IMG/VR virus record: IMGVR_UViG_3300023174_005338
Coordinates: 62,001 to 126,000 of that record
DNA: 64,000 nt
Strand: one strand, 5' to 3'
In this document: one piece after another, positions 4,130 through 59,673 of the stretch
Position numbering within the stretch: position 1 is the stretch's first letter
How the letters are laid out: each line of letters starts with the position of its first letter
Notes under the pieces: generated by a model
The model's input: the letters and a program-made list of their open reading frames with translations, nothing else
Database searches by the model: none
What the model was told of the DNA's origin: nothing
Position numbers and translations under genes: made by a program

Positions 4130-5161
4130 ATGAATACACTAAAGCGTATTGGTTTCTGTTGCAAATGGCTCAATGATCCTAGCGAATGCGGGGGTATGAA
4201 GGTCAATGCCAAAGACCGTGATCTCAACGGACGAAGCACCACCATGCGTTGGTTGCGTGAGCATCCGGCCGAAGCTGAACAGCGCCAGTGGGACATCATG
4301 AATCACAACACCTCAGCCGCGGTCAAGTTGATTGAGCGTGTGGCCACACTACCAGCCAACCGTAGAATGGTTCGTTTGGGTTCGGAAATGTTACAGGGCT
4401 ACACAGAGAAAGATTGGAAAGCCTGGTGGCAACGTCAGGAAATACAAGATCATTGTGAACGTATTTTTGCACCTATTGGAGAAACAGCCCGCAGACTGGA
4501 TGTGCGACTCAGCTTCCACCCTGGACAGTTCTGTGTGTTGGGTTCAGAGTCAGAAGAAATAGTAAATAGAAGCATAGAGGAGTTTGAATATCATGCGGAT
4601 ATGGCCAGATGGATGGGTTATGGGAAATCCTTCCAGGATTTTAAAATCAACGTACACATATCAGGTAAAGCCGGTGCCGCCGGTGCGCGACGTTCGTATG
4701 GACGACTCAGCCCCACAGCCCGCAGTTGTATTACATTTGAAAACGAAGAAATAACACATGGCCTGGATCGTTGTCTTGAACTTGCTGATATTGTGCCTAC
4801 TGTGCTTGATGTTCACCATCACTGGATCAAGACTGGAGAATATATTTCGCCCACAGATGATCGTGTTGCGAGGGTTGTGGACAGTTGGCGTGGTGTTCGT
4901 CCTGCTATGCACTACAGCGTTAGCCGTGAAGACGTACTTGTTGACCATGCCGTTCACCATAAACCAGATCATGCAGTTTTGCTAGAGTCTGGTCACAAGA
5001 AACAAAAACTGCGAGCACATTCAGATTTTTATTGGAACCCGGCAGTCACCGACTGGGCCCTGAGTTTTTGGTCCAAGTTTGACATACAGTGCGAGGCCAA
5101 AGGCAAGAACCTGGCCAGTGAGCAAGTTTACCGTCGTGCGGTAGAACTGGGGTTGGTATGA
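4130..5161 (+). CDS. uvsE: UV damage endonuclease
   Basis: IGFCCK, RLSFHPGQF, INVHISG, ITFENEE, LDVHHHW, RAHSD motifs. Confidence 0.93.
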   Translation: MNTLKRIGFCCKWLNDPSECGGMKVNAKDRDLNGRSTTMRWLREHPAEAEQRQWDIMNHNTSAAVKLIERVATLPANRRMVRLGSEMLQGYTEKDWKAWWQRQEIQDHCERIFAPIGETARRLDVRLSFHPGQFCVLGSESEEIVNRSIEEFEYHADMARWMGYGKSFQDFKINVHISGKAGAAGARRSYGRLSPTARSCITFENEEITHGLDRCLELADIVPTVLDVHHHWIKTGEYISPTDDRVARVVDSWRGVRPAMHYSVSREDVLVDHAVHHKPDHAVLLESGHKKQKLRAHSDFYWNPAVTDWALSFWSKFDIQCEAKGKNLASEQVYRRAVELGLV

Positions 5162-5818: not shown

Positions 5819-5969
5819 GGTAGTTCTCCTTGTAGAATATTTATTTTCTGTTGGATCATTATGTTTTGTTATTATGTGGCACTGCACAATATAAATACAA
5901 AGTCAGTGTTTTCACTGAGAGATTTTGATCACGAGTCAAAATCAAAATACAACCCAAAAGGAAAAAACA

Positions 5970-10821: not shown

Positions 10822-11415
10822 ATGAATTTAGTTCCAATGGTCATTGAGACAACCTCCAAGGGCGAAAGAGCCATGGACATACAATCTAGGCTACTAAGAG
10901 ACAGAATTATATTGCTCATGGATGATGTAAATGATCATACAGCAAGTCTTGTAGTTGCCCAAATGTTGTTTTTAGAAGCTGAAGATCCAGACCGCGACAT
11001 ACTTCTCTATATAAATTCTAGAGGCGGCAGCGTTACCGCTGGCATGAGCATATATGATACCATGCAGTACATAAAATGCGATGTCAGCACCATAGTCATG
11101 GGCCAGGCATGCAGTATGGGTAGTTTGTTGGCCACAGCCGGAGCCGCAGGCAAGCGTTTTATGTTGCCACACAGCCGTAACATGATACATCAACCGTCAG
11201 GTGGTGCAGAAGGTCAGGCCACCGACATTGAAATACAGGCCCGAGAAATACTAAAGATGAAACGATATTTGACAGAAATCTATGTCGCACACAACAGCGC
11301 AGGCAAGGCCTACGATGATTTTGCACGTGACATGGAACGTGATTTCTTCATGAGTGCCGAAGAGGCCGTGGCCTATGGTCTAGCAGATCAGGTAATATCC
11401 AAGCGTGACATTTAA
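10822..11415 (+). CDS. clpP: ATP-dependent Clp protease proteolytic subunit
   Basis: LVPMVIE...[53 protein letters not shown]. Confidence 0.96.
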
Positions 11416-12706
11416 GCATACCTTTTGTCCTAGTCCGTGGTTCCACATGCGAATCACCAACTCAGGCTCCTATGAACCTTGCAGATGGATGAACAAAAAT
11501 GTTAGCACTCGAGTAAATTTTGACCGTAACATAAAGACCTTGTCTCCTCTGAAGTATTTTCAAACCAACATGGCCAAGCTACGCACAGAATTGTTGCAAG
11601 GGCATGCTCCTGAAATGTGCGCAGACTGTCACGTCATGGAAGATCATGGCAAACCCAGTGGTCGGCAACGACAACTACTCAAGGTCGGCGTTCTTGGTGA
11701 ACATTTTGAAAAAAGTCTGGCCAGCTCGCCCATGCGTGCAGCGTTTGATCATAGCAATCAAAACCAAGGCGTCACAGATCGAACTGTGACAGACTGGCAG
11801 ATAGATCTAGGCAACTACTGCAATGGTGCCTGTGTGTTTTGTGTCCCTGAAAGTTCCAGTACCTTGGCCACTGAATTCTACCAACTGGGGCTCATTGATA
11901 CCATGCCACCTAGATCCTGGTGCGATGATCCGGATCTTCTGGAACAATTCATAGCAGACCTGACAGCCAGCCCTGACCTGCAATACCTGCATTTCCTTGG
12001 TGGCGAAACAGTGATCACTCCAGGATTTCAAAAAATATTGTCAGCCTTGATTGCGGCCGGCTTATCCCAACAGATCACCATTGGGTTTACCACCAATCTC
12101 ACGGTTTGGTCCGACACAGTAGTTGATCTATTGACTCAGTTCCGACAGGTGAATTTAGGCATGAGTGTGGAAACCTTGACTGCTGTCAATGACTATGTGA
12201 GATATCCCAGTCGGCAGGCCCGCACCCGACAATTATTGGATCAATGGCAGGACTTGGCCACCCGCCAGGCCTGGTTGACACAACTCAGAATCACTCCTAC
12301 TTGCCTGACCATGCACGATCTGACCACGGTATATGATTATGCCTGGCAACACAATTTGGCAGTGGAAAGTTGTAGTTTTTTTGATCGGCCTGAATTTCTC
12401 AGGATCAGTGTGCTTCCAACACAACAAAGACAAATTGCCATACACAGATTACAACAGTGGATCGAATCACATGTTGCAAATCCTTGTTCTCATCAAATCA
12501 TCAACACCAGAGATCCAAATCTAGCTCGTCAACAGATTGTGCAAGACGCTCGAAGCTATCTGCACTATCTACAATCTGCAGCAGATGAAAGTCACAGACT
12601 GCCGGATCTTGTGGCATATCTCAAACTGCTGGAAAGCCGTCGTGGCAACAGCATCTTAGACTATCTACCCCAATATGAAGACCTATTCAGATCTGCAGGC
12701 TATTGA
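11405..12706 (+). CDS. Radical SAM protein with N-terminal Cys-rich domain
   Basis: CNGACVFC (CX3CX2C), LGGET, FTTN; N-terminal CPSPW...PC. Confidence 0.9.
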
Positions 12707-26054: not shown

Positions 26055-26804
26055 ATGAGCATAGACAATTTTGTGGTCCTAGACAGTGTTTATGGAAAAT
26101 TTATTGTGGCACGCACTTGTTTGTTCCAGGCCGAGGCCTTGGTCAAAACGGGTCGTACTCACATTGAGTCGGAATTAAACAATATTTTCGCGCTGGTTGA
26201 CACCTTGCCCGATGATGCTGTTATCGTTGATGGCGGCGCCAACATTGGATTTTTTACTGTGCCTGTGGCCCATAGAACACAAGGTCGCAATAATAGAATT
26301 ATCGCATTTGAACCACAACGACAATTGTTTCAGGCACTGGGTGGTAGTTTGGCCATCAACGGATATGATCATGTGTATCTACACAACTGTGGACTCGGTG
26401 CTGAACCTGGTAAGGCACAACTACCTGCCGTAGACTACAGCATAGCGCAAGACTTTGGCACAGTTTCATTAAATGACAAAACCACGGTTGACGAACATGG
26501 GTGGATGACAGATCGCGTAGTCGATGTGACCAGCGTAGATGCCATGGCGTTGCCTAGACTAGATTTTTTCAAGCTGGATGTAGAAGGTTATGAAGTTCCG
26601 GCACTGACTGGTGCCCTTAACACCATACAAAAATACCGACCTTGGATCTGGGTAGAATATTTTATCACCGGAGCGGAACCAATCAAACAAGCTCTGTGCT
26701 CTGTTGCAGATTATGATTATTACATAGCGGATTACCAAAACATGCTGTGCATGCCCCGAGAACAGGCCAATCGGGTCAATGTGTCTGGATTACAAAAGGT
26801 CTGA
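26055..26804 (+). CDS. FkbM family methyltransferase
   Basis: VDGGANIG, IAFEPQ, FFKLDVEGYE. Confidence 0.9.
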   Translation: MSIDNFVVLDSVYGKFIVARTCLFQAEALVKTGRTHIESELNNIFALVDTLPDDAVIVDGGANIGFFTVPVAHRTQGRNNRIIAFEPQRQLFQALGGSLAINGYDHVYLHNCGLGAEPGKAQLPAVDYSIAQDFGTVSLNDKTTVDEHGWMTDRVVDVTSVDAMALPRLDFFKLDVEGYEVPALTGALNTIQKYRPWIWVEYFITGAEPIKQALCSVADYDYYIADYQNMLCMPREQANRVNVSGLQKV

Positions 26805-27259: not shown

Positions 27260-27420
27260 GAAGTTTATGGACAGACACACAAGGTCGTGAATTTGTGATT
27301 GATGCAGTTGGTGACAACGGTGCCGAAACCTGGGTGACCTATACCCGAATAGGTGATCGGACCAGTTATAGATGTTTTGCTGAAGCTTTTACATACAGAT
27401 TTAAGGAAAAAATACAATGA
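27244..27420 (+). CDS. Small hypothetical protein
   Basis: Manual translation MQLPLGSLWTDTQGREFVIDAV...FKEKIQ; fills the gap and couples to the next ORF. Confidence 0.55.
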   Translation: MQLPLGSLWTDTQGREFVIDAVGDNGAETWVTYTRIGDRTSYRCFAEAFTYRFKEKIQ

Positions 27421-27611
27421 CACCCGAACGTGAAATGATTGTGTGGGCAGTGTTGGAGGGCAAATTGCCTGAACAAATGTTGACACAAGAAGAAGTAGAC
27501 GAAGTTCTTGTGCTGGTGCAAGAAGCCATCATGGACAAGCGCCTGCAAGAGGCCGAAGCCGCAGGTAATCCCAGCGTGTTCTGGGGCTTTGATGAGGATA
27601 CTTTGCATTGA
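27417..27611 (+). CDS. Hypothetical protein
   Basis: AAGGA RBS, ATGA coupling. Confidence 0.6.
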   Translation: MTPEREMIVWAVLEGKLPEQMLTQEEVDEVLVLVQEAIMDKRLQEAEAAGNPSVFWGFDEDTLH

Positions 27612-27925
27612 GCCAGATCTTGGCCATGTGGTGTAGCGAAGGCCTGGAGTGCGTGATCGACATCACCGAGGAGCAAAAAAAGTGCATGTGGGCCGAACTC
27701 CGTGGCAAGAAATACACACCAGGGTTCAGCGTTGACATGTTGAAACTACGAGCACAGTTCAACAGCCAACGGCACTACGAGATCTACACTTTTGACTCGG
27801 GCGACCATGGGCTGATAGAAGTGCGTGGAATGTTTGAAACCACACCGCAAACCATGGTGGATTTCGTCAGAGAGCATGGCACAAAGATTTACAGTGATCG
27901 AGTCACCGACTCGATCATAGTATGA
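27608..27925 (+). CDS. Hypothetical protein
   Basis: 105-aa coupled ORF. Confidence 0.65.
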   Translation: MSQILAMWCSEGLECVIDITEEQKKCMWAELRGKKYTPGFSVDMLKLRAQFNSQRHYEIYTFDSGDHGLIEVRGMFETTPQTMVDFVREHGTKIYSDRVTDSIIV

Positions 27926-27929
27926 CAGT

Positions 27930-28160
27930 AACGTGTTCTGTAGCAGGAACTAGTCTGACCCGGACGATTGAACTGGAGTAGCTACCAGGGGTGGCAGTCT
28001 CCCAACCTAGAGGCCGCTGGCAATGCGAAAACGGTCCCCGCGTGGAGCGGATGGTGAGGTAGAGATTGTGGTCTTGCTGAGTCCTATCGGGCAACCAAGA
28101 TGTGCTGTCATTGGATTATGGCACGGATTTCTACTATAGTAACCGCCGGGGGACGCAGAG
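27930..28160 (+). ncRNA. Putative structured non-coding RNA, family unassigned
   Basis: GC-rich gap with no convincing ORF and nested helices GTCCCC/GGGGAC, GCGG/CCGC, GTAGAGATT/GATTTCTAC closing two hairpins (TCTTG/CAAGA; GTGCTGT/ATGGCAC); strand assumed from the flanking operon. Confidence 0.55.
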
Positions 28161-28166
28161 CATTAT

Positions 28167-28219
28167 GTTAGTGAACACTAACATCAGTAGTTGACAAAGT
28201 CCAGCATTTGTAGTATAAT
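28167..28219 (+). promoter_or_regulatory. 16-bp palindrome plus promoter
   Basis: GTTAGTGAACACTAAC (28167-28182), 8 bp, then TTGACA-N17-TATAAT. Confidence 0.75.
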
Positions 28220-28305
28220 TACTAATAGCTAGCCAATTTAAACTTGAAGAAGTTGGCGGCTGTTTATTAACCGACAGTCTCAGGACTGCTATGAAAGGAT
28301 GTAAA

Positions 28306-29367
28306 ATGGCACAGCGCCTTACCCGCAAACTTACCGATGTGGCCGCGGAAGTTGAAAAGCAAATCAAGGCCCACTACAACATCACGCAACGAGAACTTGA
28401 TTCTTTCCGTGAACGAGCTCAAGCAAAACATAAATTGGGTTTAGATTTTCCTGAATCAAAAATGGTTCCTATTGATGATCTTTGGATTGACTACGAAGTC
28501 CAACGAGATGTCTTGCACAAACACATCATCAGTATCATGAAAAATTGGGATCCAAGAATTTGTAGTCCTGTGTCGGCTTGCCGTTTGCAAGATCGCGATC
28601 GCAACGATACATATGATGGTCAGCACAGAACCATCTCGGCTACTATTTTAGGCTATAAAGAAATTCCCGGAGCAGTGGTTCATACCGATGATCCAAACTT
28701 TGCTAGCCTGGCCTTTGAAATGCTCAATGACACTGGTGTAAAACGTTTAGGTCCAGGAGACTTGCATCGTAACGCCTTGGTTCGTTACAAAAATGGCAGC
28801 CGAGAAAGCCGGAATGTGTGTGCTCGCACTTTGCAAGATCAATTTGATAATTTACAAATCGACCTGCAAGACAAAGGTTCCCGGTCCAGCGATAATTTAC
28901 GTGGCGATCATGATTACTTCTTTAGTCATTTCAAGTACGCATACAAAGGCATTGAGATTGACGAATCCGGCAAGGTATTGTATGCCATACTGGAGGCTAT
29001 AAAAACAGTGTTTCCTTTGCAAGAAGAAATCGATCAAGGTGTGTTTATTGGGTTGTGCGAATTGCAACGCCTAAACAGCACAAACTCACGCAACAAATTG
29101 CCCGACGGTTGGATGAAAATTTTATTGGAATCTGCCAAGACTACTTTTAAAAGTAGTCACTTGATACATGCCAAGGCAAAAATCCAATGGGAACACAGTC
29201 ATCCAGGTGCAGGCTGGGTGGCACCCACTGCCATGAGCAACTTCCTGCGTGAGATGCACTTACGCAACGGTGGTCAGTTAAATCTCCCCTATCACGGCGA
29301 AGGTGCCAAGGTTGGTATTGTGGATGGTAATGTTGCTCCAGGACTGTTTCCACAAGGAGGCGAATAA
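28306..29367 (+). CDS. ParB/Srx-superfamily protein with DGQHR motif
   Basis: LWIDYEVQRDV...WDPRI...YDGQHRTISA...AFEMLND; AAAGGA RBS. Confidence 0.8.
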   Translation: MAQRLTRKLTDVAAEVEKQIKAHYNITQRELDSFRERAQAKHKLGLDFPESKMVPIDDLWIDYEVQRDVLHKHIISIMKNWDPRICSPVSACRLQDRDRNDTYDGQHRTISATILGYKEIPGAVVHTDDPNFASLAFEMLNDTGVKRLGPGDLHRNALVRYKNGSRESRNVCARTLQDQFDNLQIDLQDKGSRSSDNLRGDHDYFFSHFKYAYKGIEIDESGKVLYAILEAIKTVFPLQEEIDQGVFIGLCELQRLNSTNSRNKLPDGWMKILLESAKTTFKSSHLIHAKAKIQWEHSHPGAGWVAPTAMSNFLREMHLRNGGQLNLPYHGEGAKVGIVDGNVAPGLFPQGGE

Positions 29368-29368
29368 T

Positions 29369-29848
29369 ATGAAATGCGTGTTAAAAGAAACTGTATTTGG
29401 AGAACGGCTAAATGAACAAATGTCACTGAGTGATGCAATTGATTTGCTAAGTGACCTAGACCTCATTAACATTGGTGAGTTGGGTGAAAAAGCAGTAAGC
29501 ATACAAACTGGAATCAGTCAATGTGCCAAAAATACTCCTAACATTGATCTGCTCAACGGTATTCAAATCAAAACCGCTCAAACAAATCCTGATAATCCAA
29601 CAAACGGATTTCTCAAAGCCTGGTTCACTATCAAGAATTGCACGGCTCCAATTGCTGTTATTGTTACAGAACGTGTTACAAAGAAACAATACTTTTTTTA
29701 TATACCGTACTCAGGATACAAACATATGAATGCCAATGCAGTCAGTATTCCATTTGACGAGCGTGGTAGACCATACACTAAAAATGAATGGTGGTATTAT
29801 AACGTACCAACCTGGGCAGATCTTTGCAAAAAGGCATCGACATGTTAA
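29369..29848 (+). CDS. Putative PD-(D/E)xK nuclease
   Basis: GELGEKAV...PNIDLLNGIQIKTA (E...D...QxK). Confidence 0.55.
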   Translation: MKCVLKETVFGERLNEQMSLSDAIDLLSDLDLINIGELGEKAVSIQTGISQCAKNTPNIDLLNGIQIKTAQTNPDNPTNGFLKAWFTIKNCTAPIAVIVTERVTKKQYFFYIPYSGYKHMNANAVSIPFDERGRPYTKNEWWYYNVPTWADLCKKASTC

Positions 29849-30399
29849 AAGAAAGTCTTGATCAATTTACGGCACCCATCTACGGCAAAACTCAGCGCAC
29901 CCCCGATACCTATCGCACAGTGGCCGCTTACTGTAAGAAGAATCTGGATCGCTTGGTCAACAACTACAATGAAGTAGTAAATGATCAACAGTTATTGCGT
30001 GAAATCCGTAATGATATTGACACATACTTGCGTCGCTATCATGAATACTGCATCCAGCAACGTGATGGCATGCTGGCTCACTATCATGAAATAGGCGCCG
30101 ACACGGATTGTGATTTTGAACATCTGATACCAGCGGCTCGTATTCGTGATTTACTTCTTGCCGGCGCCATTACAGTAGAACAAGCTCTTAATGCTCCTAC
30201 AGTGAGATTGAGTCGGGCCAAACACCGGGCACTCAAAGATGCAGGTTGGTCCGCCAAAACTCCCAACATGTGGTTGCCGTTTGAACGCTATACCAATGTG
30301 TTTGGAGCTACTTACCAAACCCACGACGGAACGGCTGTTGATCCGTTGACATGGACCTTGGAAAAGCATTACAATTACTTTCAACACCTTGTGTTATGA
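29842..30399 (+). CDS. Hypothetical protein with HNH-like EHxxP motif
   Basis: DCDFEHLIP followed by a predicted strand/helix (PTVRLSRAKH). Confidence 0.55.
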   Translation: MLKESLDQFTAPIYGKTQRTPDTYRTVAAYCKKNLDRLVNNYNEVVNDQQLLREIRNDIDTYLRRYHEYCIQQRDGMLAHYHEIGADTDCDFEHLIPAARIRDLLLAGAITVEQALNAPTVRLSRAKHRALKDAGWSAKTPNMWLPFERYTNVFGATYQTHDGTAVDPLTWTLEKHYNYFQHLVL

Positions 30400-31457
30400 A
30401 CAATTACTTAGAAACCATCCGAACCAAGTACGACATCAAGGACTATGTTGAAACGCCTGTGACCATACCTGATTTGCCTACTGAAGGCATTGTGCTGATA
30501 GTAGGAACTTCGGGTTCAGGCAAGAGCACGATCCTGCGCAGACTTGGTCACACCCAAGCCGTGACGTCGAGTCCTTGCAGTACTGTGATAGAAAACTTTT
30601 CTACCCCTGAACGCGGCGAGGAATTACTTCTAGCCGCAGGCTTGCGTAGCATACCCACTTGGTTCCGGCCACCTAATACATTGAGCAATGGTGAATATCA
30701 CAGATTTGAAATGGCCATGGCCATAGATCAAGGTATCCGTTGCATTGACGAATTCACTAGCGTAGTTGACCGCGACACAGCCAAGAGCTTGGCCTACAGT
30801 GTGAGGAAGTATTACAATCAGAATCCTGGTGTGCTATATATTGCCAGTTGCCACAGAGACATAACGGAGTGGTTGGATCCTGACTGGGTCTACGACACAG
30901 ACCTGCAGAAACTTGATAATCGGAGGTCACTTCTTCGACTGGGGACAAGACCAAAACTCACACTCACCATCCGAAGCACAACTCCGGACTATTGGCGATA
31001 TTTCAGTAAATATCATTATCTAGATACCCGGATGAGCCGTAGCGTTCATTGCTATGTGCTGTTGCTAGGTGACAAGCCCATTGGTTTCCATGCTGCAATA
31101 CATTCAACCAATAGAGATATTCACAGTTACTGGCGTGGACACAGGACTGTGATACTGCCTGAGTTTCAAGGCATGGGTATAGGCACTGCGTTCAGTGATG
31201 CCATAGCACAGATCTATGTGGATCGCGGCCTAAGATACTTTAGCAAGACTGCTCATCCAAGTTTTGGTGAACACAGAGAAAAGAGTCCCTTATGGCGGCC
31301 AACCAGTACCAACCGTAAGAGTCGAAAAGGCAGTTATCTGCTCAAGGATGGCTCAATCAGAGCCATGCCCGGCTACGGTGGTAATGCAGAAATCGCTCGA
31401 AGAGATGCAGATCGTGTGTGTTACAGCCACGAATACATTGGCGTCAAGAAGAACTGA
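30396..31457 (+). CDS. ABC-type ATPase fused to GNAT acetyltransferase
   Basis: Walker A GTSGSGKS, signature LSNGE, Walker B IDEFTS, H-loop SCH; C-terminal WRYFSKYHYL...VILPEFQGMGIG. Confidence 0.88.
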   Translation: MNNYLETIRTKYDIKDYVETPVTIPDLPTEGIVLIVGTSGSGKSTILRRLGHTQAVTSSPCSTVIENFSTPERGEELLLAAGLRSIPTWFRPPNTLSNGEYHRFEMAMAIDQGIRCIDEFTSVVDRDTAKSLAYSVRKYYNQNPGVLYIASCHRDITEWLDPDWVYDTDLQKLDNRRSLLRLGTRPKLTLTIRSTTPDYWRYFSKYHYLDTRMSRSVHCYVLLLGDKPIGFHAAIHSTNRDIHSYWRGHRTVILPEFQGMGIGTAFSDAIAQIYVDRGLRYFSKTAHPSFGEHREKSPLWRPTSTNRKSRKGSYLLKDGSIRAMPGYGGNAEIARRDADRVCYSHEYIGVKKN

Positions 31458-31752
31458 GTTCGCATTTTAGAGTTTGATAGTCTTGTATGGTACTGACCGT
31501 TGGTGTGGTCCGAGCATCATAATGGCTTTCCATGGTCTGCCATTCTTCTTCGTCCACAGCTGAAGTCACAATCAATTCATATTCGTGACCATCGGCACTA
31601 TACAATTTTATAGTTTCAAATCCAAATCCGCCTGCGGCAGCGTTTTTGGCCGCTTCAGCAAGACCCTTCAAGGCCTGACGATCTGCTACTATGTAACCGG
31701 TGCCTCGAGGACCGGTGGGTGGATACATGTGTAATCTTCCTGTGGGTTTCAT
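31444..31752 (-). CDS. Hypothetical protein
   Basis: ATGA-coupled to dnaE. Confidence 0.65.
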   Translation of the reverse strand: MKPTGRLHMYPPTGPRGTGYIVADRQALKGLAEAAKNAAAGGFGFETIKLYSADGHEYELIVTSAVDEEEWQTMESHYDARTTPTVSTIQDYQTLKCELSSS

Positions 31753-33422
31753 TGATAGTGTTCTATGTCCTTTAAGTCTAGCTTCTTGTGTTTATACACT
31801 GTAACATATTCTGAATTATTTTTGTACCCCAGTTTGCCCTGACCCCAGAGTATGGGTTGATCATGAAAGCTAGCCGCATGTGGTAGGATTACATCAAGAT
31901 AACGACCATTGCCAGTACCTAGTGTAACAAAGGTTATGTATTTCTTTCGGTCGGATTTGAATACTCTATAGTTGGCTACTAGGCCGCAGAACTCCACAGT
32001 TCCTGGGCCACGTCGTTCTTGACAGGCCGGAATGAATCTTTGACTTGACCAGCGACCGTTGGCACGCAGTTCGGCCACTTCACCACCTTCGGTCACAGCA
32101 GGCACAGCACCAGCCAACTTGGCTTCTTGCCAGTAAACCCAGCGGGCGTAGCTACCTTGGCAGTGCTTGAGAGCCGCACGCCAGAACTGTTCAGGATTGT
32201 GTGCTTTCTGATAGGCCAAGGCCCAGATCAATCGGCCCAGGTTGATGGCATGTGCCCTACACAGTCCGAAATGGCTGAGCTCACGTAGTGCTAAAAATAT
32301 TTCTTCTTTTTTGGGATGGTCTCCTACTAGCACCATGAACTCAAAGATCTTTTCTTCATCCTTTTTGGCAAAGGCTCGCCGCCACATGTCCGCAGTGTAT
32401 TGATCACAACCCAAGATTTCTGAAATCAGCTCTATGGCATCGTCCTCAAACACTATGGTATCTTGCAGTTGATCTGTCGACCAGTCTTGGAACGCTGACG
32501 CACGACGCCGACCCATGGTAGCCACTGGTCTTATAAGTGCTGTGGCCAGCACACAATCACTTCTAGTTCTTGGACGAATGGCCTTGCACAATCGTTTCAT
32601 GGCTGGGCTTTCGGCCTGTGTAACACCCAGCACATTGCCTGAGCTCAACAACTCTGCTGTGGCTTCATCTTCTTCGGGATAGTCCAACAAGTCACGCTGA
32701 TCTATCTCCCACAGTTGACTGAGTCCGCGATTGGCCAAGATATCGATCTTGAAATGTTCAAGATCTTCTATTTCATACTTGTCCAAAAGTATTTGATTGG
32801 TGCCGTTGATTAAACTTTTTGGTACGGCACGATCAAAGATCAGGATACCGCCGCAGTGTTTTGAAATACAACGTTTTTTGCCCATGAGTTTTTGTGTGAG
32901 CCGTTCAGCATCCTCCACATAGTCGGGCACTACTTCTTCAAACCGGAAGTTTCTTTTCAGTGTGCCCTTGGCACCCAGGCGCTTGGCTGCTTCTCTGCGT
33001 GCTGATTTTTCTTTGTACATCACATAGTTGCTTACCCTGGCACTCTGTCCAGGCCAGCGCCGGAATATCCTGTTCATGACTTCTTCCTGTTGCCAGTGCG
33101 GGAAGTCTAGATCGATGTCGGGCAGGTCATCACGTTTGGGATTCATAAAGCGTGACAAGGGTATGCGTTCCTGTATAGGATCCACATCCGAAATGCCCAT
33201 GAGCCAGCATAGCAAACTACTGCCAGCTGATCCTCGAGTGATGTGTGGAATGTCTCGTGTGAGATCCAGGATTTCTCTCACACGCAAAAAATGTCGTGCG
33301 AAATTCAAGTTGGCTATGATTTCTAGTTCTTCTTCAAGCCGTGTTGCGTAAGCTGGATCGTTGGGTAGTTGTCGTGTAAATTTTGAGATTAGTATTTCTA
33401 GTTCGTCATATCTGCTTTTCAT
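31749..33422 (-). CDS. dnaE: Compact DNA polymerase III alpha-like (family C) protein lacking the PHP domain
   Basis: RGSAGSSLL, RFMNPKRDDLPDIDLDF, KHCGGI, FKIDIL, FGLCRAHA, C-terminal OB-like strand set. Confidence 0.9.
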   Translation of the reverse strand: MKSRYDELEILISKFTRQLPNDPAYATRLEEELEIIANLNFARHFLRVREILDLTRDIPHITRGSAGSSLLCWLMGISDVDPIQERIPLSRFMNPKRDDLPDIDLDFPHWQQEEVMNRIFRRWPGQSARVSNYVMYKEKSARREAAKRLGAKGTLKRNFRFEEVVPDYVEDAERLTQKLMGKKRCISKHCGGILIFDRAVPKSLINGTNQILLDKYEIEDLEHFKIDILANRGLSQLWEIDQRDLLDYPEEDEATAELLSSGNVLGVTQAESPAMKRLCKAIRPRTRSDCVLATALIRPVATMGRRRASAFQDWSTDQLQDTIVFEDDAIELISEILGCDQYTADMWRRAFAKKDEEKIFEFMVLVGDHPKKEEIFLALRELSHFGLCRAHAINLGRLIWALAYQKAHNPEQFWRAALKHCQGSYARWVYWQEAKLAGAVPAVTEGGEVAELRANGRWSSQRFIPACQERRGPGTVEFCGLVANYRVFKSDRKKYITFVTLGTGNGRYLDVILPHAASFHDQPILWGQGKLGYKNNSEYVTVYKHKKLDLKDIEHYQ

Positions 33423-57629: not shown

Positions 57630-58546
57630 AAGAACTTTGGGTAGAAAAATATCGGCCCACCACAGTGGATGGTTATGTGTTTGTGGACGTTGCTCAACGC
57701 GAACAGGTTCAGAGCTGGATACGGGATAAAAGCATACCACACCTGTTGTTTTCGGGCAGTCCCGGCACCGGCAAGACCACCTTGGCCAAGATGCTGATCA
57801 ACGAGCTGGGCATTGATGAATACGATGTGATGTGGGCCAATGGATCTAAAGAAGCCAGAAAAATCGAGTGGGTGGACAAACTGATCAGCTTTTGTCAGAC
57901 CATGCCATTTGGTGCATTCAAGGTTGTCCTGATTGACGAGGCCGACTACATGAATCCACAAAGTGTGCAACCGGCCCTGCGTAATCTCATGGAAGACTAC
58001 AGTGATCATGTGAGATTCATCCTGACCTGTAACTATCCCAACAAAATCATTCCGCCCATACACAGTCGTTGCCAACAACTGCACATAGTCAAAACAGATC
58101 AAGTGGAATTCACTGCCCGAGTGGCCACTGTGCTGGTCACAGAACAAGTGCAATTTGACATTGATACTCTTGACAGTTATGTGCGAGCCACTTATCCAGA
58201 TCTGCGCAAGTGCTTGAACCTAGTTCAACAAAACAGCACCACAGGGCAACTGCTGGCACCCAGCTCGGCAGACAAAGCCGCAGGAGACTGGAAACTGGAC
58301 TGTGTGCAACTGTTCAAAGATGGCCGTATTCGTGAAGCTAGAACATTGATTTGTCAATCAAGCACTCCAGAAGAAGCTGACGACGTATTCCGTTGGATGT
58401 ACGACAACTTGGATTTATGGGCCCAGGATCCAGAACGGCAGGATCAGGCCATCATAATCATACGCAACGGTCTGGTCAATGTGCCCATGGTGGCAGATCA
58501 GGAAATCAATCTCAGCGCAACTCTTTGTGAGCTATGTCAACTGTAA
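57626..58546 (+). CDS. Sliding-clamp loader subunit (T4 gp44 / RFC small subunit-like)
   Basis: WVEKYRP, GSPGTGKTT, IDEAD, FILTCNY, SRC motif. Confidence 0.93.
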   Translation: MKELWVEKYRPTTVDGYVFVDVAQREQVQSWIRDKSIPHLLFSGSPGTGKTTLAKMLINELGIDEYDVMWANGSKEARKIEWVDKLISFCQTMPFGAFKVVLIDEADYMNPQSVQPALRNLMEDYSDHVRFILTCNYPNKIIPPIHSRCQQLHIVKTDQVEFTARVATVLVTEQVQFDIDTLDSYVRATYPDLRKCLNLVQQNSTTGQLLAPSSADKAAGDWKLDCVQLFKDGRIREARTLICQSSTPEEADDVFRWMYDNLDLWAQDPERQDQAIIIIRNGLVNVPMVADQEINLSATLCELCQL

Positions 58547-59673
58547 CAACATCACAATTTGATACCCTAGAACCTGCTATAGATCCCAACAACCGGATCA
58601 CATTCCTGCTGGATTGGGAACTGACCATGAAATGCAATTTAGATTGCAGTTATTGTGGAACAGGTATCTATTTCGGACATGACAATACTACTCGGCACCC
58701 ATCTTTGGACAAATGTTTGGATGCCTTGGATTTTATGTTTCTCTACGTGGATTTGTATATGCGTACAAAACCTCCGGGTCTGCGCTATGTTGTATTAAAT
58801 GTGTATGGTGGCGAAAGTCTACATCATCCAGACATTGTTGAAATTTTACGTCAGGTTAGACATCGACATCAGCACTATGCTGATCGTTGGAGACTGACAG
58901 TAACCACCACCACCAATGCTATAGTATCCAACAAAAAACTTCGGCAAATCATACCCTTGATTGATGAATTTAGTGTGAGTTATCACACTGAAAATACAGC
59001 CAAACAAAAACAACAATTCAAAGACAATCTACTGACCATTGCCGGCTCTGGCGTACAACAAAAATGTGTGGTACTCATGCATCAACAACCGGAGCTTTTT
59101 CAAGATGCTGTGGACATGATTGACTGGTTGACTCATAACAATATCCGAGTATTACCAAGACAATTAGATGCTAATGAAGGTTTAGATGGTCTTAGAATTT
59201 ACAAACAAAATCAGGTGAAATGGTTCAGTAAACTCTACAAAAACAAAACATTTGGTGAGTCGATGGAGTTGTTGGATGGCAACACCGACTCCAACTTGAC
59301 CGATGTGGGCCGAGCCTGCTGTGGAGGACGGCAAATCTGTGCCGATCAAAATTACAAACAAAGACACTTTTATGTGGGAAACAAATTTCCCGACTGGTAT
59401 TGCAGCGTGAATCATTTTTTTCTTTATGTCAAACAGGTCAACGGAGAAGTTTTTGTCAACAAAGATTGTAAAATGAATTTTGATGGCAAGGTTGGCCCCA
59501 TTGGCAATCTCAGCGACACTCAACAGATTTTGTCTACGCTTCGTGACCAACTTGACACAGATTCCATGCCCGTAATACAATGTAAAAAATACAACTGTTT
59601 TTGTGGTCTGTGCGCTCCCAAAGCCAAAGATTTATCAACTTATCATTCTATCATGGAAAAATATCACATATGA
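58534..59673 (+). CDS. Radical SAM protein
   Basis: CNLDCSYC, YGGESL, TTNA, SYHTE; C-terminal Cys cluster CKKYNCFCGLC. Confidence 0.9.
   Translation: MSTVTTSQFDTLEPAIDPNNRITFLLDWELTMKCNLDCSYCGTGIYFGHDNTTRHPSLDKCLDALDFMFLYVDLYMRTKPPGLRYVVLNVYGGESLHHPDIVEILRQVRHRHQHYADRWRLTVTTTTNAIVSNKKLRQIIPLIDEFSVSYHTENTAKQKQQFKDNLLTIAGSGVQQKCVVLMHQQPELFQDAVDMIDWLTHNNIRVLPRQLDANEGLDGLRIYKQNQVKWFSKLYKNKTFGESMELLDGNTDSNLTDVGRACCGGRQICADQNYKQRHFYVGNKFPDWYCSVNHFFLYVKQVNGEVFVNKDCKMNFDGKVGPIGNLSDTQQILSTLRDQLDTDSMPVIQCKKYNCFCGLCAPKAKDLSTYHSIMEKYHI

Follow-up and report, generated by a model that had tools for sequence, protein, structure and literature searches.

A new predicted structured RNA of lake jumbo phages that is often encoded within tRNA gene arrays

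The genomic locus

The window, by which we refer to the whole 64,000-nucleotide stretch of DNA that was analysed, comprises bases 62001-126000 of a 337,119-bp IMG/VR phage record (IMGVR_UViG_3300023174_005338), which has direct terminal repeats and is rated 100% complete. Within this window, a gap of 380 nt without a convincing ORF is present between the stop of an ORF at 27608-27925 (+) and the likely start, at 28306, of the next gene. The upstream ORF encodes a protein of 105 aa for which no match was found in Pfam or PHROG. The downstream gene (28306-29367, +) matches the ParB-like family PHROG 1033 (E 0.0015), and it corresponds to the gene that the original prediction referred to as a DGQHR nuclease. 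The gap contains no + strand ORF of 40 codons or more, and it is moderately GC-rich (0.51-0.59 in comparison to about 0.40-0.50 nearby). The observation of a GC-rich, structured intergenic element at this position, as made in the original prediction, is confirmed.

A number of other sequence features are found at the borders of this element. At the end of the upstream ORF, a hairpin GATCGAGT-CACCG-ACTCGATC (27896-27916, +) is followed by a -10-like CATAGT/TAGTAT (27916-27923), and these could represent a promoter or a processing site for the RNA, although no canonical -35 precedes the -10-like box. Immediately after the element there is another hairpin, ATGTTAGT-GAAC-ACTAACAT (28165-28184, +), which is not followed by a U-run and which could be a 3'-end, stabilising or operator element. 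Both of these hairpins were read directly from the sequence. Further downstream, a TTGACA-17-TATAAT sequence (28191-28219, +), which matches the sigma-70-type promoter consensus in 12 of 12 positions, separates the element from the ParB-like/DGQHR operon. No tRNA or tmRNA was identified anywhere in the window by ARAGORN.

Searches against the Rfam 15 database (4227 models, including the RNase P A/B/archaeal/type T, tmRNA, SRP, 6S, Y RNA/YrlA, T-box, group I/II intron, GOLLD, ROOL, OLE, raiA, HEARO and self-cleaving ribozyme families) gave no hits at the gathering score for the whole window and no hits at E<=10, with relaxed filters, for the region 27700-28400. The predicted folding energy of the element is also unremarkable. 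The whole element has a value of -83.4 kcal/mol with z = -0.70 (45 of 200 shuffled sequences folded as well), the reverse strand has z = -0.66, and the 3' domain has z = -1.94. Thermodynamic stability therefore does not constitute evidence either way, and the inference that this fold is more than chance rests upon comparative evidence.

Distribution of homologues

To examine whether related elements are present elsewhere, we first identified at least 80 IMG/VR loci containing relatives of the downstream ParB-like protein. Of the 74 of these that were checked, most have only about 60-230 nt upstream of this gene, and only 6 show similarity to the element. Alignment of these copies with that from the window revealed long invariant blocks that were separated by visibly compensating stems. 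Two DNA patterns derived from the invariant blocks were then used to scan public sequence collections. In IMG/VR 35 loci were identified, which increased to 68 with a looser pattern, and at least 120 contigs, nearly all from lakes and other fresh water, were found in the JGI metagenomes. In contrast, only two matches were detected in 185,579 prokaryote species genomes (from a Hyphomicrobiaceae MAG and Shimia litoralis), and as both lie in coding DNA and lack the 3' half of the motif, they are regarded as chance hits.

A covariance model for this family (R1) identified a single copy in the 337-kb genome of the window (referred to below as G000), at 27925-28164 with a score of 168.5 bits. One copy each was also found in three related near-complete genomes (G002, G003, and G004), but none in a fourth (G001, a related 374-kb phage). 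A blastn search against 50,697 GenBank phages yielded no match, and the nearest GenBank record based upon DNA polymerase, the uncultured 484-kb phage LR756508.1, also lacks this RNA. Seven further representatives of the family showed no Rfam match over the element at E<=10. The lengths of the family members range from 183 to 265 nt.

Based upon these comparisons, the predicted mature RNA in the window corresponds to 27929-28164 (+), about 236 nt. Its ends are inferred from relatives that are flush with tRNA genes: the 5' end is placed by analogy with copies that start with GAAC directly after the CCA of an upstream tRNA (UAAC in the window), and the 3' end corresponds to the conserved tail ending in AGAGCAUU.

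Conserved secondary structure

A ten-helix model was constructed on a MAFFT alignment of 53 distinct copies (A3). In this alignment, 94.1% of the cells form standard pairs, in comparison to 37-50% when the 3' partners were slid by 1-3 columns, 30 of 43 pairs show changes on both sides, and none of 500 shuffles reached the observed values. In a second, covariance model-based alignment of 57 rows (A4), 96.4% of the cells pair against 33-49% in slid controls, 33 of 43 pairs show double changes, and the covariation score is 0.552 against 0.05-0.08. Although the latter alignment leans towards the model, the MAFFT-based result does not, and the two are in agreement. The pairing statistics given below for the individual helices are mainly from the A4 alignment.

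The 5' domain consists of five hairpins that are tied by a pseudoknot. The first of these, H1 (27935-27950), has 5 bp, all of which show double compensatory changes, with 95.8% of cells paired. H2 (27953-27965) is preceded by the invariant UAGU, and 100% of its cells pair, with the alignment pair 34-42 occurring as GC (31), CG (14), and AU (12). The loop of H2 (GACCC) donates ACCC (27958-27961) to a pseudoknot, PK1, where it pairs with GGGU (27989-27992), thereby enclosing H3. All cells of PK1 are paired, and its one variable pair switches from C-G (48) to U-A (7) or U-G (1). This pseudoknot, which was first seen by eye, was not noted in the original prediction. H3 (27973-27988; CUGG...CCAG) has a variable loop and 4 of 4 pairs with double changes, with 86.8% of cells paired, although the alignment is imperfect in this region. 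H4 (27997-28014) contains an invariant ..A-CC..AA.. in its loop, and 5 of 5 pairs show double changes with 100% pairing. H5 (28015-28027) is a 3-bp stem (100% paired; closing pair CG in 44, UA in 10, and GC in 2) that closes a near-invariant 7-nt loop UGGCAAU (28018-28024). This loop, which is invariant in A3, contains a UGNNA pentad that is T-loop-like, a reading that is inferred from the signatures described in PMC3664808.

The 3' domain is a long stem, P6-P7, which carries a lineage-variable apex. P6 (28034-28154) consists of P6a (28034-39/28149-54), P6b (28041-42/28147-48), and P6c (28047-50/28143-46). All 6 pairs of P6a show double changes, and the pair 141-301 of P6c occurs as CG (36), UA (13), and AU (7). 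P7 (28058-67/28126-35), in which 6 of 6 pairs show double changes, closes a three-way junction with P8 (28071-76/28096-101), its inner hairpin P8a (28081-84/28089-92), and P9 (28102-08/28118-24). The three apex helices, for which a minimum-energy fold was used, covary among 18 copies of the window type. The element ends in a conserved unpaired 3' tail, GCAGAGCAUU (28155-28164), in which A, G, C, and A are invariant columns in 53 sequences. The unpaired motifs that are nearly or strictly conserved in this family are UAGU, GGGUGGUA, the H5 loop UGGCAAU, GUGGARG, UAUAAUUA, and the tail AGAGCA.

The nested stems and the three-way junction (hairpins TCTTG/CAAGA and GTGCTGT/ATGGCAC) that were put forward for the 3' domain in the original prediction are therefore correct, and every helix in this domain is kept by compensatory changes in relatives. 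Of the four hairpins proposed for the 5' part, GTTC/GAAC (H1) and GTCT/GGAC (H2) are confirmed, whereas GGAG/CTCC and GGCCG/CGGTC are wrong, as they clash with the covariation-supported helices H3, H4, H5, and P6a. The + strand assignment is also supported, as G-U or U-G is the commonest or a frequent pair at seven positions, which would be A-C mismatches on the other strand, and the orientation matches that of the neighbouring tRNAs in relatives.

A mutual-information scan for further tertiary pairs gave top non-helix pairs (e.g., columns 9-23 and 22-67) that track subfamilies and are sterically implausible, and these were treated as phylogenetic noise. The possibilities that the 5' GAAC(C/G) leader is an RNase P CR-V or an HDV-like P1 strand, or that the tail pairs with the H5 loop, were also considered, but no consistent complement or covariation was found by inspection.

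Genomic context of the RNA

Analysis of the related loci with ARAGORN, which called the flanking tRNAs but never the element itself, shows that many copies are embedded in large phage tRNA arrays of 10-29 tRNAs, one of which also holds a tmRNA. These copies lie on the tRNA strand and they exactly fill the space between two tRNAs. In one related locus, L104, tRNA-Asp ends in GCCA at 4179, the RNA starts with GAAC at 4180, and tRNA-Leu starts at 4383 right after AGAGCAUU. Of 103 distinct copies, 15 have a same-strand tRNA within 40 nt on both sides, 23 have one upstream only (mostly with a 0-2 nt gap), and 9 have one downstream only, so that 47 copies are flush with same-strand tRNA genes. Fourteen more have a tRNA within 1.5 kb and 42 have none in the DNA examined.

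The window copy belongs to the last of these groups, and its genome contains only 5-6 tRNAs and a tmRNA, which are located more than 100 kb away. The stand-alone copies of the window type are syntenic, with the order p139-p58-p64-(p105)-RNA-promoter-(ParB-like)-p191-ATPase/GNAT, and the upstream ORF of 105 aa is a syntenic neighbour of stand-alone copies. At the position preceding the RNA, these relatives have a differently spelled small hairpin plus a -10-like box (ATAGT/TACAAT/TATAAA), and within 3-45 nt after the RNA a TTGAC -35 element (most often TTGACA or TTGACC) recurs. Hairpins similar to that at 28165-28184 follow the RNA in the loci L125, L183, L185, and L254. In another stand-alone lineage (L135, L169, and L213), the RNA is followed by a terminator-like hairpin that is flanked by U and A runs. 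The presence of the RNA is uncoupled from the number of phage tRNAs: it is present in G004 with 0 tRNAs, in G000 with 6 tRNAs, and inside the arrays of G002 and G003 with 23 and 31 tRNAs, but it is absent from G001, which has 33 tRNAs, even when the array of this genome was scanned with filters off.

Presence in lake metatranscriptomes

Three freshwater metatranscriptomes each contain about half of the 31-mers of the element, and one of them (run X20) contains only 6% of those from the 2.4 kb around it. When compared with the region 27400-28800 of the window, the contigs from runs X20, X23, and X24 are 187-198 nt long and cover only 27943-28144, with 4-5 differences in X23 and X24 and 14 in X20, whereas the depth is zero over 27400-27916 and 28152-28290. 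On an array copy (locus L127), the summed word depth over the conserved family core reaches 2,483 in X20, 244 in X24, and 142 in a fourth run, X25, while X23 has no depth on the core. The neighbouring tRNAs show up to about 655 in X20 and about 19 in X25, but in X24 one neighbouring tRNA bin is deeper (1,197) than the core. Hence, the core exceeds the tRNAs in two of the four runs. As these data are from assembled contigs without strand information, which sum over relatives, they bear upon the presence and discreteness of the RNA but not upon its ends or copy number.

Interpretation

The interpretation made in the original prediction is partly supported by these results. A novel structured non-coding RNA read from the + strand is supported, and the homologues with abundant compensatory changes that had been named beforehand as a test of it were found. 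However, a functional tie to the DGQHR/ParB-like operon, in the form of a guide, antitoxin or regulator, is not supported. We consider that the window encodes one member of a previously uncatalogued family of roughly 180-265-nt structured RNAs that is specific to a clade of uncultured freshwater jumbo phages. What our analyses show is a conserved, pseudoknotted and strand-specific fold, a single copy per genome in the genomes checked, a distribution limited to phages in the collections searched, and, within the limits of the contig data, accumulation in RNA libraries, whereas the maturation of the RNA, its action in trans, its function and any binding of tRNA or catalysis are inferred. We have good confidence in the identity of this element as a real, expressed, trans-acting structured RNA of a new family, but this does not extend to the mechanism discussed below.

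In nearly half of the copies, the RNA is one cistron of a tRNA array, and it is presumably cut out by the host tRNA-processing nucleases, with RNase P making its 3' end. In the lineage of the window, whose genomes have 0-6 tRNAs, the gene sits alone at a conserved junction between two operons, and it would be made from the weak -10-like element at 27916-27923 or by processing of the upstream transcript. As the RNA persists in genomes with almost no tRNA genes and is missing from one genome with many, it is not essential to arrays and its target is unlikely to be the phage array itself, which looks like a convenient platform for expression and processing. The persistence of this RNA after loss of the tRNA array narrows its possible functions.

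The invariant unpaired motifs argue for a conserved partner, and the inferred function is that of a stable, trans-acting RNA working on a conserved host or phage partner in translation or tRNA metabolism. However, no partner protein was identified, as Ro60, RtcB, and L7Ae were not found in G000. Two of the motifs, GGG-UGGUA and the H5 loop (GC)UGGCA-AU, fit the UGNNA and GNUG signature of T-loops, which build the tRNA-elbow docking module of T-box Stem I, RNase P and the L1 stalk (PMC3664808), and the three conserved UGG triplets could pair with CCA ends. Our preferred but tentative suggestion is therefore that the RNA docks tRNA through T-loop-like UGGNA pentads and UGG-CCA pairing, acting as a sponge, a shield or a processing cofactor. 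This suggestion rests on motif resemblance only, and both candidate pentads start with U, whereas the canonical double T-loop module has one AGNNA and one UGNNA pentad (PMC3664808), the former of which was not found here. Other ribonucleoprotein or ribosome-directed roles, or a ribozyme, are also possible. A bolder form of this view, which is not excluded but appears unlikely, is that the family represents a new class of trans-acting tRNA-binding RNA, possibly catalytic, that jumbo phages express together with, or instead of, their own tRNA sets. It would dock the tRNA elbow and CCA end through T-loop-like UGGNA modules, either to protect or re-route host or phage tRNAs (e.g., against tRNA-targeting defence nucleases) or to assist their maturation, and it would then be a free-standing cousin in mechanism, but not in descent, of the T-box Stem I and the RNase P specificity domain.

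Large and intricately folded RNAs with invariant unpaired nucleotides have almost always turned out to be ribozymes, ligand or RNA sensors, or cores of ribonucleoproteins. The RNA described here is abundant in lake metatranscriptome contigs and widespread in uncultured jumbo phages, and its placement suggests a link to tRNA biology, where the phage-host conflict over anticodon nucleases and tRNA-depleting defences is currently an active field. The alignment of more than 100 natural variants also provides a resource for structure determination and binding studies. No description of this RNA was found in the literature, and a genomic-language-model preprint does not mention phage or tRNA arrays, although the RNA may already be one of the 8,495 unnamed IMG/VR candidates reported by Fremin and colleagues (2023). 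We regard it as a new RNA class.

Alternative explanations

Of the alternatives considered, a ribozyme survives best, although it is unlikely. It could be a new tRNA-processing or self-releasing catalyst that cuts at its own 5' border after the CCA of the upstream tRNA, or a drastically reduced RNase P-like RNA. The complex pseudoknotted fold with invariant unpaired nucleotides is consistent with this, as is the fact that the RNA abuts tRNA 3' ends with 0-2 nt in 38 of 103 copies, and nothing obvious explains cleavage between the CCA and the first G. However, no Rfam ribozyme, including the RNase P, HDV, glmS and hatchet families, is matched at E<=10, no P4-type conserved regions were seen by eye, and the stand-alone copies have no tRNA to process. 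Further, as the tRNAs in these arrays are themselves packed 2-8 nt apart, flush packing needs no special catalyst.

It is also improbable that this is a highly divergent member of a known RNA class that is missed by the Rfam models, such as a T-box, an RNase P specificity domain, a GOLLD or ROOL fragment, a Y RNA or a tmRNA. There are motif-level echoes of tRNA-binding RNAs, viz. a GNUG...UGGNA apical loop, GGGUGGUA, and a K-turn-like GUGAUG/YUGAUG in array copies, and GOLLD and ROOL are also found near phage tRNA islands (PMC12286853). However, cmscan with relaxed filters gave nothing at E<=10 on eight representatives, and each family considered failed on a defining feature. The 5' and 3' ends (GAAC.. 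and ..AGAGCAUU) are unpaired in the covariation-supported structure, in contrast to the paired ends of a Y RNA, RNase P RNA or tmRNA. In place of the P4 pseudoknot that RNase P RNA builds from CR-I and CR-V, the only pseudoknot is that of the H2 loop with GGRU. The YrlA model is silent over the element, and no TROVE (Ro60) or RtcB domain was detected in the 337-kb genome.

Equally improbable is that the element is only the structured 3' end of the upstream operon (a terminator or stabiliser), or a DNA-level site such as an origin, recombination site or operator, with no function as a free RNA. Although it lies at the end of a co-directional gene string, is flanked by hairpins (27896-27916 and 28165-28184), and has no canonical promoter of its own and no U-tract terminator, the same sequence is an independent unit between tRNAs in arrays and has its own terminator-like hairpin in the L135, L169, and L213 lineage. 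Additionally, the RNA-library contigs cover it but not the upstream genes, and the G-U pairs make the structure strand-specific, which argues against a DNA element.

A cis-acting leader, riboswitch or attenuator, or a guide or antitoxin RNA, serving the downstream operon is very unlikely and already largely refuted. The RNA does lie directly upstream of this operon in the window and in about 10 syntenic relatives, but because of the intervening promoter it is not in the 5' UTR of the gene. Only 6 of the 74 checked loci with this gene carry the RNA upstream, many family members lie inside tRNA arrays far from that gene, and in the loci L115, L130, and L131 the ParB-like gene is missing downstream but the RNA is kept.

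Lastly, a small protein encoded on the minus strand, where ORFs of 59 aa and 77 aa overlap the element (27915-28094 and 28134-28367) in the window and where frames are often open over most of the element, with a median longest stop-free run of 64 codons, can be dismissed, as the substitutions in stems are compensatory and not codon-periodic (mean column entropy by phase 0.81, 0.80, and 0.64 in the 5' domain), the copy lengths fall about equally in the three classes modulo 3, tblastx found no conserved frame beyond near-identical copies, and in arrays the element is boxed in by tRNAs on the other strand.

Comparison with known RNAs

In terms of possible working parts, the nearest known systems are the T-box leader RNAs and the double T-loop tRNA-elbow docking module that they share with RNase P and the L1 stalk (PMC3664808). 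The RNA has an apical loop with a GNUG...UGGNA signature (H5), a second invariant UGGUA pentad, several UGG triplets that could pair with CCA, and a K-turn-like internal loop in array copies, and its genomic company is tRNA. In contrast to a T-box, however, the copies lie between tRNAs or upstream of a promoter and not in a 5' leader, no specifier loop, AGNNA bulge or terminator/antiterminator switch was identified, no terminator follows the conserved 3' part in array copies, and the order of the motifs is not collinear. The Rfam T-box and RNase P models also do not match, and any resemblance is limited to possible working parts.

The inferred formation of the 3' end in array copies resembles that of MALAT1/mascRNA, where the 3' end of a non-tRNA transcript is defined by RNase P cleavage at the 5' side of an adjoining tRNA or tRNA-like element. 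That case is eukaryotic and unrelated in sequence, and for the phage RNA the mechanism is inferred from gene spacing only. In its setting, the RNA is close to the stable RNAs C and D (species 1 and 2) of the bacteriophage T4 tRNA cluster, which are small stable non-tRNA RNAs of unknown function that are co-transcribed and co-processed with the tRNAs. The T4 RNAs are shorter (about 120-140 nt) and no relation in sequence is expected.

The nearest known RNAs in setting are ROOL and GOLLD (PMC12286853), which are structured RNAs of unknown function encoded by phages and prophages, often beside or within tRNA islands, that are highly expressed, have elaborate covarying folds with pseudoknots, and have no known protein partner. 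The RNA described here shows no sequence or structure match to their models (cmscan E>10), it is a third or less of their size (GOLLD RNAs often exceed 800 nt and ROOL is also classed as large), and so far it is confined to freshwater jumbo phages and absent from the bacterial genomes searched. It adds a compact and tractable (about 200-nt) third example, beside ROOL and GOLLD, of the unexplained rule that phages place ornate RNAs in tRNA islands.

Sequence Elements Flanking the RNA

Immediately downstream of the RNA, a hairpin consisting of 8 bp with the loop GAAC and lacking a U-run was observed (window 28165–28219, together with the promoter that follows). This hairpin is followed 6 nt later by a perfect sigma-70 promoter (TTGACA-17-TATAAT). 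Similar hairpins, which are mostly conserved rather than covarying, recur in the related loci L125, L183, L185, and L254, and this element could be either an operator or the 3′-end element of the RNA. On the upstream side (window 27896–27923), an 8-bp hairpin is present within the last codons of ORF 27608–27925, where it is followed by CATAGT/TAGTAT. Relatives retain a hairpin of different sequence at the same location before ATAGT, TACAAT, or TATAAA, and in some of them (viz. L115, L131, L181, L190, L246, and L254) a proper TTGATG-18-TACAAT promoter is found at this position.

In the downstream region (window 28291–31457), the ParB-like gene more likely starts at the ATG at 28306, which has AAAGGA 9 nt upstream, than at 28291. 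This gene is followed by the overlapping ORFs 29303–29848 and 29824–30399, and by a P-loop NTPase fused to a GNAT acetyltransferase (30351–31457, PHROG 11143).

Variants of the RNA and its Distribution in Related Loci

In the related locus L134, a 32-nt fragment matching only the H1 and H2 hairpins of the RNA (5841–5872, minus strand; 21 bits) lies about 550 nt upstream of the full copy in the same tRNA array, and it looks like a remnant of a duplication or replacement. Divergent variants of the RNA were also identified in L152 (926–1122), L172 (2545–2741), and L177 (1501–1745). Although these variants keep the 5′ domain, they have a re-spelled P6a helix (for example CCAGAGA/TCTCTGG) and a tail ..GAAGCUU, and the variant in L152 also lacks the GCGG/CCGC helix. 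They scored 116–122 bits, and were not recovered in full by the strict pattern. In the loci L146, L147, L154, and L165, a conserved mini-ORF (GGAG-spacer-ATG AAA CGA GGT AAA CTC TAG, encoding MKRGKL) followed by a hairpin is present about 20–100 nt after the RNA, between it and the next tRNA, and it may be a leader peptide or a second small element in these arrays.

The RNA also occurs on very large metagenome contigs, including L187 and L199 (366–371 kb) and L204 (JACCDG010129944.1; 583,758 bp), the largest of which may be either a mega-phage or a host chromosome carrying a prophage. G001, a complete related jumbo phage of 374 kb, has 33 tRNAs but no copy of the RNA, even when the search was carried out with filters off. 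The array of this phage (in L298) has many gaps of 400–1100 nt.

Other Features of the Phage Genome

In the genome containing the window (G000), the only tRNAs, which were identified as Met, Cys, Trp, Glu, and Thr by ARAGORN (six by Rfam), and a permuted tmRNA (tag ANASNDETFALAA) cluster outside the window, at positions 196326–205977 of contig C1, more than 100 kb from the RNA. Within the window, an FkbM-type methyltransferase (26055–26804) is present just upstream of the syntenic block, and the window also contains two radical-SAM-like proteins (11405–12706 and 58534–59673) and a DnaE-like DNA polymerase (31749–33422, minus strand). The best GenBank match of this polymerase (36.5%) is from LR756508.1, a 484-kb uncultured phage, and no cultured relative was found.
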